A DNA stretch of 64,000 nucleotides. It comes from Octopus sinensis. Taxonomy: Eukaryota. A model generated the notes under the pieces. The model ran no database searches, was not told the DNA's origin, and saw only the letters and a list, made by a program, of their open reading frames with translations. Below, in pieces: positions 34,864 to 35,015 of this stretch (its first letter is position 1; each line of letters opens with the position of its first letter). Location: assembly GCF_006345805.1 (NCBI RefSeq), contig NC_042997.1, positions 102,238,001-102,302,000 of the forward strand, written 5' to 3'. A program made the translations under genes and the position numbers.

Positions 34864-35015
34864 CTTTTATGTGTTAAGGAATATTTTCTTTTTATGTGAA
34901 TAAACTTTAATTTATAACAGATAATTCAAGTAATTAACAGATGACAAAAAATAATGAATGTGATAAACAACAAAATAAATACAAGGTGTTATTAAAAGCC
35001 ATAAGTAAAGGATAC
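34864..35015 (-). other. U12-type (minor spliceosome) GT-AG intron, p38 intron 8, 152 bp
   Basis: 5' splice site GTATCCTTT; branch site TTCCTTAAC (34881-34873) 9 nt before the terminal base; AAG acceptor with no polypyrimidine tract. Confidence 0.93.

Follow-up and report, generated by a model that had tools for sequence, protein, structure and literature searches.

The published consensus for U12-type introns comprises a ATATCCTT/GTATCCTT donor and a TCCTTAAC branch box (PMC2831892). Several mitogen-activated protein kinase genes are known carriers: both MAPK14 and MAPK9 have a U12 intron, and in mouse and human MAPK14 its retention leads to a premature stop and to less protein (PMC8883539). 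The presence of a minor intron in human p38 has likewise been remarked on in review ('p38MAPK ... itself harbors an mi-INT', PMC8199999), and in human cell lines activated p38 stabilises the short-lived U6atac and raises minor-intron splicing (Younis et al. 2013, PMC3728624). Most U12 introns are reported to have been lost in invertebrate lineages (PMC2831892). Minor introns are reported in Octopus sinensis and in molluscs, and the survey behind that report, covering more than 3000 genomes with Octopus sinensis among them, argues for a neutral explanation of much of the evolution of minor introns (PMC10639083).

Here we analyse a 64-kb stretch of Octopus sinensis DNA (the window, taken at its full length) that contains most of a p38/MAPK14-like gene. 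We conclude with high confidence, from sequence comparison, that intron 8 of this gene is very probably a U12-type GT-AG intron that is removed by the minor spliceosome, is orthologous to the vertebrate p38 minor intron and has been inherited since the animal ancestor. Like the U12 intron of vertebrate MAPK14 and MAPK11, it splits the His codon of FPG(N/T)D|HIDQL in phase 1, opens with the donor |GTATCCTTT and carries a TCCTTAAC-like branch box near its 3' end, and its retention is predicted to bring in a premature stop, as described for MAPK14 (PMC8883539). It is, however, far shorter than the vertebrate introns (152 nt versus 1648-8903 nt), and its branch box matches the consensus at 9/9 positions, whereas the vertebrate boxes match at 7-8/9.

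An octopod p38 gene with a U12-type intron

Exons were found by tblastn, with a p38 probe first and a database protein next. The role of the human MAPK14 probe was limited to locating exons; all exon boundaries were set by reference to the sequence of the window itself and to a database protein (P0004). The spliced exons 2-12 form one unbroken frame that encodes a 334-residue kinase, with a Pfam Pkinase match (E=4e-57) and, in exon 7, the T-G-Y activation loop that defines p38 kinases. The best-matching solved structures in the PDB are all MAPK14 (about 1e-136), and a search with a 300-aa assembled query gave, as the best database protein, 'mitogen-activated protein kinase 14-like [Argonauta hians]', with which it shares 93% identity; a 51-aa peptide from exons 8 and 9, used as a protein query, returned three short, weak matches only. 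The kinase domain, the T-G-Y motif and MAPK14 as nearest relative together place the gene in the p38 subfamily. Ten of its introns are complete in the window (Table 1), so that both the numbering of intron 8 and the count of nine other introns hold.

Table 1. Positions of the p38/MAPK14-like gene, its exons and the signals of intron 8 within the window
Feature	Position	Strand	Remarks
p38/MAPK14-like gene, exons 2-12	27832..61888	-	tblastn, Pfam and structure matches
Exon 2	61759-61888	-	
Exon 3	60675-60733	-	
Exon 4	53979-54090	-	
Exon 5	43403-43432	-	
Exon 6	38904-38951	-	
Exon 7	36579-36696	-	
Exon 8	35016-35087	-	72 nt; ends with the first base of His
Intron 8	34864..35015	-	152 nt; phase 1; probably U12-type (GT-AG subtype); exons 8 and 9 splice in frame
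U12-type 5' splice site GTATCCTTT	35007..35015	-	Exon side ...GATC|; same 9-mer in 10/10 orthologues
U12-type branch-point box TTCCTTAAC	34873..34881	-	9/9 match to consensus
Branch-box-to-acceptor stretch ACATAAAAG	34864..34872	-	9 nt, with the AAG 3' splice site at its end
Exon 9	34784-34863	-	80 nt; last two bases of His plus IDQLNKILIMLGKPSEEFIENISSSD
Exon 10	33176-33254	-	
Exon 11	31128-31301	-	
Exon 12	27832-27935	-	TAA stop included

On the minus strand, exon 8 ends with ...GGAAATGATC at 35016 and intron 8 starts with GTATCCTTTACT at 35015 (in a longer reading, ...TTCCCTGGAAATGATC up to 35016, then GTATCCTTTACTTATGG...); the intron ends with ...AAAATATTCCTTAACACATAAAAG at 34864, the boundary reads ...ACATAAAAG|AC, and exon 9 follows with ACATTGATCAATTAAAT.... 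The intron splits the His codon (C|AC) of FPGND|HIDQL, and joining 35016 to 34863 restores ...FPGND-H-IDQLNKIL.... Its first nine bases, GTATCCTTT at 35015-35007, agree with the U12 donor |RTATCCTT, and an exact copy of the U12 branch box (TTCCTTRAY), TTCCTTAAC, lies at 34881-34873. The presumed branch A is the second A of TTCCTTAAC, at 34874, 10 nt from the last intron base at 34864. This short distance is spanned without a polypyrimidine tract, as only 2/9 bases of ACATAAAAG are pyrimidines, and pyrimidines make up a fraction of 0.33 of positions -12..-4 in intron 8, while the other introns average 0.76 there. A poor fit to a home-made U2-type donor model, and a position and phase shared with recognised U12 introns, complete the picture.

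The original prediction, made from the letters of this stretch, had seen here an invertebrate p38 MAPK gene with a full U12 signature in its 152-bp intron 8 and U2-type introns in the other nine places. All of this stands: the gene is an octopod p38 with a T-G-Y loop and the Argonauta hians MAPK14-like protein as its closest match, each listed signal was found in its place, and the nine other introns have GTAAGT, GTGAGC or GTAATx donors, T-rich tracts and U2-like scores.

Two features of the encoded protein deserve separate mention. Cephalopod p38, as represented by the window, Argonauta and a transcript from the sequencing run SRR7548197, has a one-residue insertion (HYN-GKA-VD versus HYN-QT-VD; window 36579-36590, in exon 7), and exon 7 measures 118 nt in cephalopod p38 versus 114-115 nt in the other mapped genes. 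Furthermore, cephalopod p38 has Thr for Ile immediately before the catalytic HRD (AEITHRDLKP versus AGIIHRDLKP; window 43403-43414, in exon 5).

The region downstream of the p38 stop (1-27800) holds nothing convincing among ORFs of at least 130 aa, an ORF at 5665-6081 (-) has no Pfam match, and an Rfam scan of the whole window returned zero RNA families, with no snRNA, snoRNA or miRNA in or near intron 8.

Orthologous introns across animals

For comparison we assembled ten p38 genes, comprising the one in the window and nine fetched genomic loci to which the proteins were mapped exactly; the nemertean and Dreissena p38 genes are not part of this set, as their genomic records were not found. 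In 10/10 of these genes the same His codon is interrupted in phase 1 by an intron that starts with |GTATCCTTT and whose length and branch box vary (Table 2). The other intron positions are also largely common to the ten genes, and in the eight that were fully tabulated the remaining introns all have U2-like donors.

Table 2. The intron orthologous to octopod intron 8 in nine further p38 genes
Source	Intron length	Branch box
Argonauta hians (octopod)	549 nt	TTTCTTAAC
Mytilus edulis (mussel)	2324 nt	GTCCTTAAC
Dysidea avara (sponge)	506 nt	ACCTTAAC
Fish MAPK14A	8903 nt	TTCCTTTAC
Bird MAPK11	1648 nt	weak
Daphnia magna	239 nt	weak
Argiope (spider)	3324 nt	ATCTTAAC
Bacillus rossius (stick insect)	9051 nt	TGTCCTTAAC
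Galleria (moth)	493 nt	AACCTTAAT

The expectation that vertebrate p38 genes carry a U12 intron at this position agrees with what we find in fish MAPK14A and bird MAPK11, where codon and phase are the same. For JNK, to which the original prediction assigned a U12 intron at about this position, the literature confirms the presence of such an intron in MAPK9 (PMC8883539). The proposal that the intron is ancestral to bilaterians is borne out and can be extended, as the sponge has it too. Since a GTATCCTTT intron recurs in the same codon and the same phase from sponge to bird, the p38 U12 intron is at least as old as animals, its origin lying no later than the last ancestor shared by sponges and bilaterians.

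In Daphnia magna and bird MAPK11, no convincing TCCTTAAC-like box was found within 25 nt of the acceptor (best matches 5/9 and 7/9); in these two genes the branch site is either degenerate or farther from the acceptor. A perfect donor alone does not prove U12 type in every lineage, because Daphnia and the bird have a weak branch box despite a perfect donor.

The sponge locus has peculiarities of its own. Another kinase gene (positions 1-433 of the fetched locus), with a 375-aa product and a Pkinase domain, ends about 70 nt upstream of Dysidea avara p38 and is possibly a tandem paralogue of it. Among the sponge introns of about 50 nt there is, moreover, one further long intron (2415-2928; 514 nt, U2-like), which falls within the counterpart of exon 11.

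Intron length and the surrounding sequence

At 152 nt, intron 8 is by far the shortest of the window's introns, the rest spanning 1.0-10.5 kb (1025-10546 nt for the other nine complete introns, whose acceptors are YAG except for one AAG). The original prediction took this shortness as a sign of constraint, and here it fails. In Argonauta the orthologous intron measures 549 nt, and its length elsewhere among animals is 239-9051 nt. In mussel and stick insect no intron of the gene is longer; it is about ten times as long as its neighbours of about 50 nt in the sponge and about three times as long as its neighbours in Daphnia, and is large in fish and spider. Alignable sequence in the two octopod introns is confined to about the first 14 nt and to the segment that runs from branch box to acceptor. 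Between these ends lies loose similarity in an AT-rich repeat, which is expanded in Argonauta, and the Argonauta intron also carries an unrelated insert of about 300 nt. On the ortholog lengths and the alignment of the two octopod introns, we reject the equation of a short intron with constraint. In the p38 U12 intron only the splice signals are constrained, and the small size of intron 8 is most simply an incidental state of its lineage, without the transposon and repeat insertions that swell its neighbours.

Several such insertions can be seen in the window. An RVT_1 ORF fragment (Pfam, E=9e-20) lies at 28057-29355 (+) in p38 intron 11, antisense to the gene; it adjoins a 150-aa ORF, coincides with a GC-rich patch of strongly positive GC skew at 28-30 kb, and is probably a decayed LINE-type retroelement. 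Intron 3 contains two GC-rich segments of about 1.2 kb (54678-55887 and 58198-59441) that are inverted, 75-90% complementary and about 2.3 kb apart. Each holds a tandem array with a 62-67-nt unit (55511-55727 and 58435-58636), and together the segments explain why GC content peaks at 54-56 and 58-60 kb; they may be copies of a single repeat facing in opposite directions, or else the very long terminal inverted repeats of one element. Introns 3 and 4 also contain CA/TA-rich, microsatellite-like arrays (46269-46469, 47985-48446 and 56553-57110; for example, one with a 22-nt period in 9 copies). The long Cys/Val/Tyr-rich ORFs in these two introns, considered as genes, proved spurious and are produced by the arrays.

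Retention and a possible p38-U6atac loop

Retention of intron 8 is predicted to add 152 nt (152 mod 3 = 2), shifting the frame and reaching a stop after 34 intron codons. The product would lack subdomains IX-XI of the kinase and with them this part of its C-terminal lobe, and in the predicted reading frame a retained intron would leave no productive message. Full-length octopod p38 would depend on minor-spliceosome activity, because unspliced intron 8 shifts the frame and stops translation.

In a functional reading, the U12 type has been kept because of a positive feedback, in which active p38 would stabilise U6atac and so aid the splicing of its own intron, with intron retention limiting p38, in cephalopods and perhaps in all animals; the original prediction had suggested such a loop for cephalopods. 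The effect on which it builds, namely that p38 activity in human cells stabilises U6atac and boosts minor-intron splicing, had been stated in the original prediction and is confirmed in the literature (PMC3728624). Other observations point the same way: retention of the MAPK14 U12 intron cuts protein in mouse and human cells (PMC8883539), retention of the octopod intron would give a premature stop, and the U12 type has been kept in 10/10 animals, insects and Daphnia included, despite the reported invertebrate losses (PMC2831892). Nevertheless, we regard this reading as unlikely. The p38-dependent turnover of U6atac is known here solely from human cells, a neutral account exists for much of minor-intron evolution (PMC10639083), minor introns as a rule keep both position and type, and the argument from constrained length has fallen away. 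The U12 type in all ten lineages is compatible with a function and, at this sample size, also with an ancestral state that decays slowly.

The octopod gene resembles the human p38MAPK-U6atac 'molecular switch' (PMC3728624) in that it is an orthologous kinase gene that itself has a minor intron, and differs from it in that the octopod loop is proposed rather than observed. An autoregulatory p38/U6atac stress circuit that dates to the origin of animals and works in cephalopods is likewise unlikely, and we treat a p38/U6atac loop in cephalopods as legitimate speculation. An inherited minor intron, kept in position, phase and type, is the reading that we prefer.

Transcript evidence and the gene model

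Support for the splice junction comes from a related cephalopod. The Logan assembly of SRR7548197 contains a 2.5-kb, intron-free cephalopod p38 transcript with 80% nucleotide identity over the coding sequence. It crosses the homologous exon 8/9 junction, and its match to exon 8 of the window stops exactly at 35016. At this point the transcript itself is unusual, as Pro (GAT C|CA ATT, GNDPIDQL) replaces the otherwise invariant His of DHIDQL; the exon-side C at the U12 junction is retained despite the Pro codon.

These data bear on whether the annotation itself could be an artefact, with the p38 locus being a pseudogene or the boundaries of exons 8 and 9 misplaced. Two circumstances would suit that reading: the transcript is that of a relative, and exon 1 (about 41 codons), searched for with human and Argonauta p38 probes, is absent from the window and lies beyond its right end. 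A plus-strand match at 59130-59246, considered as exon 1, was weak and was rejected as spurious. We nevertheless hold an artefact to be highly improbable, given that the frame of exons 2-12 is open and stops where the Argonauta protein stops, that identity to this protein reaches 93%, that the intron positions agree with those of nine other p38 genes, and that the match of the relative's transcript breaks off at the predicted donor.

U12-type and U2-type signals compared

An exact match to both U12 boxes, as in intron 8, is the maximum score that any U12 matrix can give. We scored the U12 side as consensus matches and built home-made weight matrices for the U2 donor and acceptor, trained on 76 other introns of eight p38 genes. 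With these, intron 8 has a donor score of -1.1 bits (76 other introns, 7.7 +/- 2.6, minimum 1.0) and an acceptor score of -3.5 bits (8.3 +/- 3.5, minimum -1.5), and its U2 fit falls below that of every one of the 76 other p38 introns at donor and acceptor alike. A U2-type matrix score had been named in the original prediction as evidence that would speak against it; the values obtained are not U2-like. The other nine introns of the window reach 5.5-13.1 bits at the donor and 5.4-13.5 bits at the acceptor. As for the branch box, intron 8 has a 9/9 match at the proper distance, 73/76 other introns have at most 6/9, and the other nine in the window never exceed 6/9.

The two signals are also rare. 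Counting both strands, GTATCCTTT occurs once in the 64-kb window (expected 0.68) and so does TTCCTTAAC (expected 0.96); both single copies lie on the gene strand, at opposite ends of intron 8. By our own arithmetic, the joint chance of such a placement of these 9-mers in any of the ten introns is about 1e-7 or less.

The least probable alternative is that an ordinary U2-type intron, spliced by the major spliceosome, resembles a U12 intron by chance, and although GT-AG termini suit both spliceosomes, we dismiss it on the joint placement of two single-copy 9-mers at the intron ends, U2 donor and acceptor scores that are the lowest among 84 introns, the lack of a pyrimidine tract, and a donor that is identical throughout the animal tree though the intron interiors cannot be aligned.

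Discussion

The U12-type reading of intron 8 fits a scheme whose steps follow from what is established about U12 splicing. Octopod p38 pre-mRNA would lose the intron through the minor spliceosome (U11/U12, U4atac/U6atac and U5). U11, and later U6atac, would pair with the donor GTATCCTT, and U12 would pair with TTCCTTAAC, with the branch A bulged out at 10 nt from the AAG acceptor. The close spacing of branch point and acceptor may stand in for a pyrimidine tract, making U2AF-type recognition unnecessary. Over evolutionary time, the p38 U12 intron has been inherited with its position, phase and type unchanged.

Set against the U12-type GT-AG class as catalogued in U12DB/IAOD/MIDB, the octopod intron shares the extended invariant donor, a branch box located some 10-15 nt before the acceptor, the lack of a pyrimidine tract, a non-zero phase and deep positional conservation, and it is likewise a lone minor intron among many major ones. 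We see no difference in kind, and intron 8 reads as a textbook example of the class. It is thus real but ordinary: the minor-intron gene family is known, the phylum has been surveyed before, and the intron is quite possibly already recorded in intron databases.

What is added here is the finding of the probable U12 type at an identical codon in 10/10 animal p38 genes, from sponge to bird; the intron is also one of the few to survive even in insect and crustacean lineages. As such, it lends itself to use as a handy marker or reporter of minor-spliceosome activity that could be carried over to very many animals, and it is the natural intron in which to ask whether the human p38-U6atac switch is ancient.
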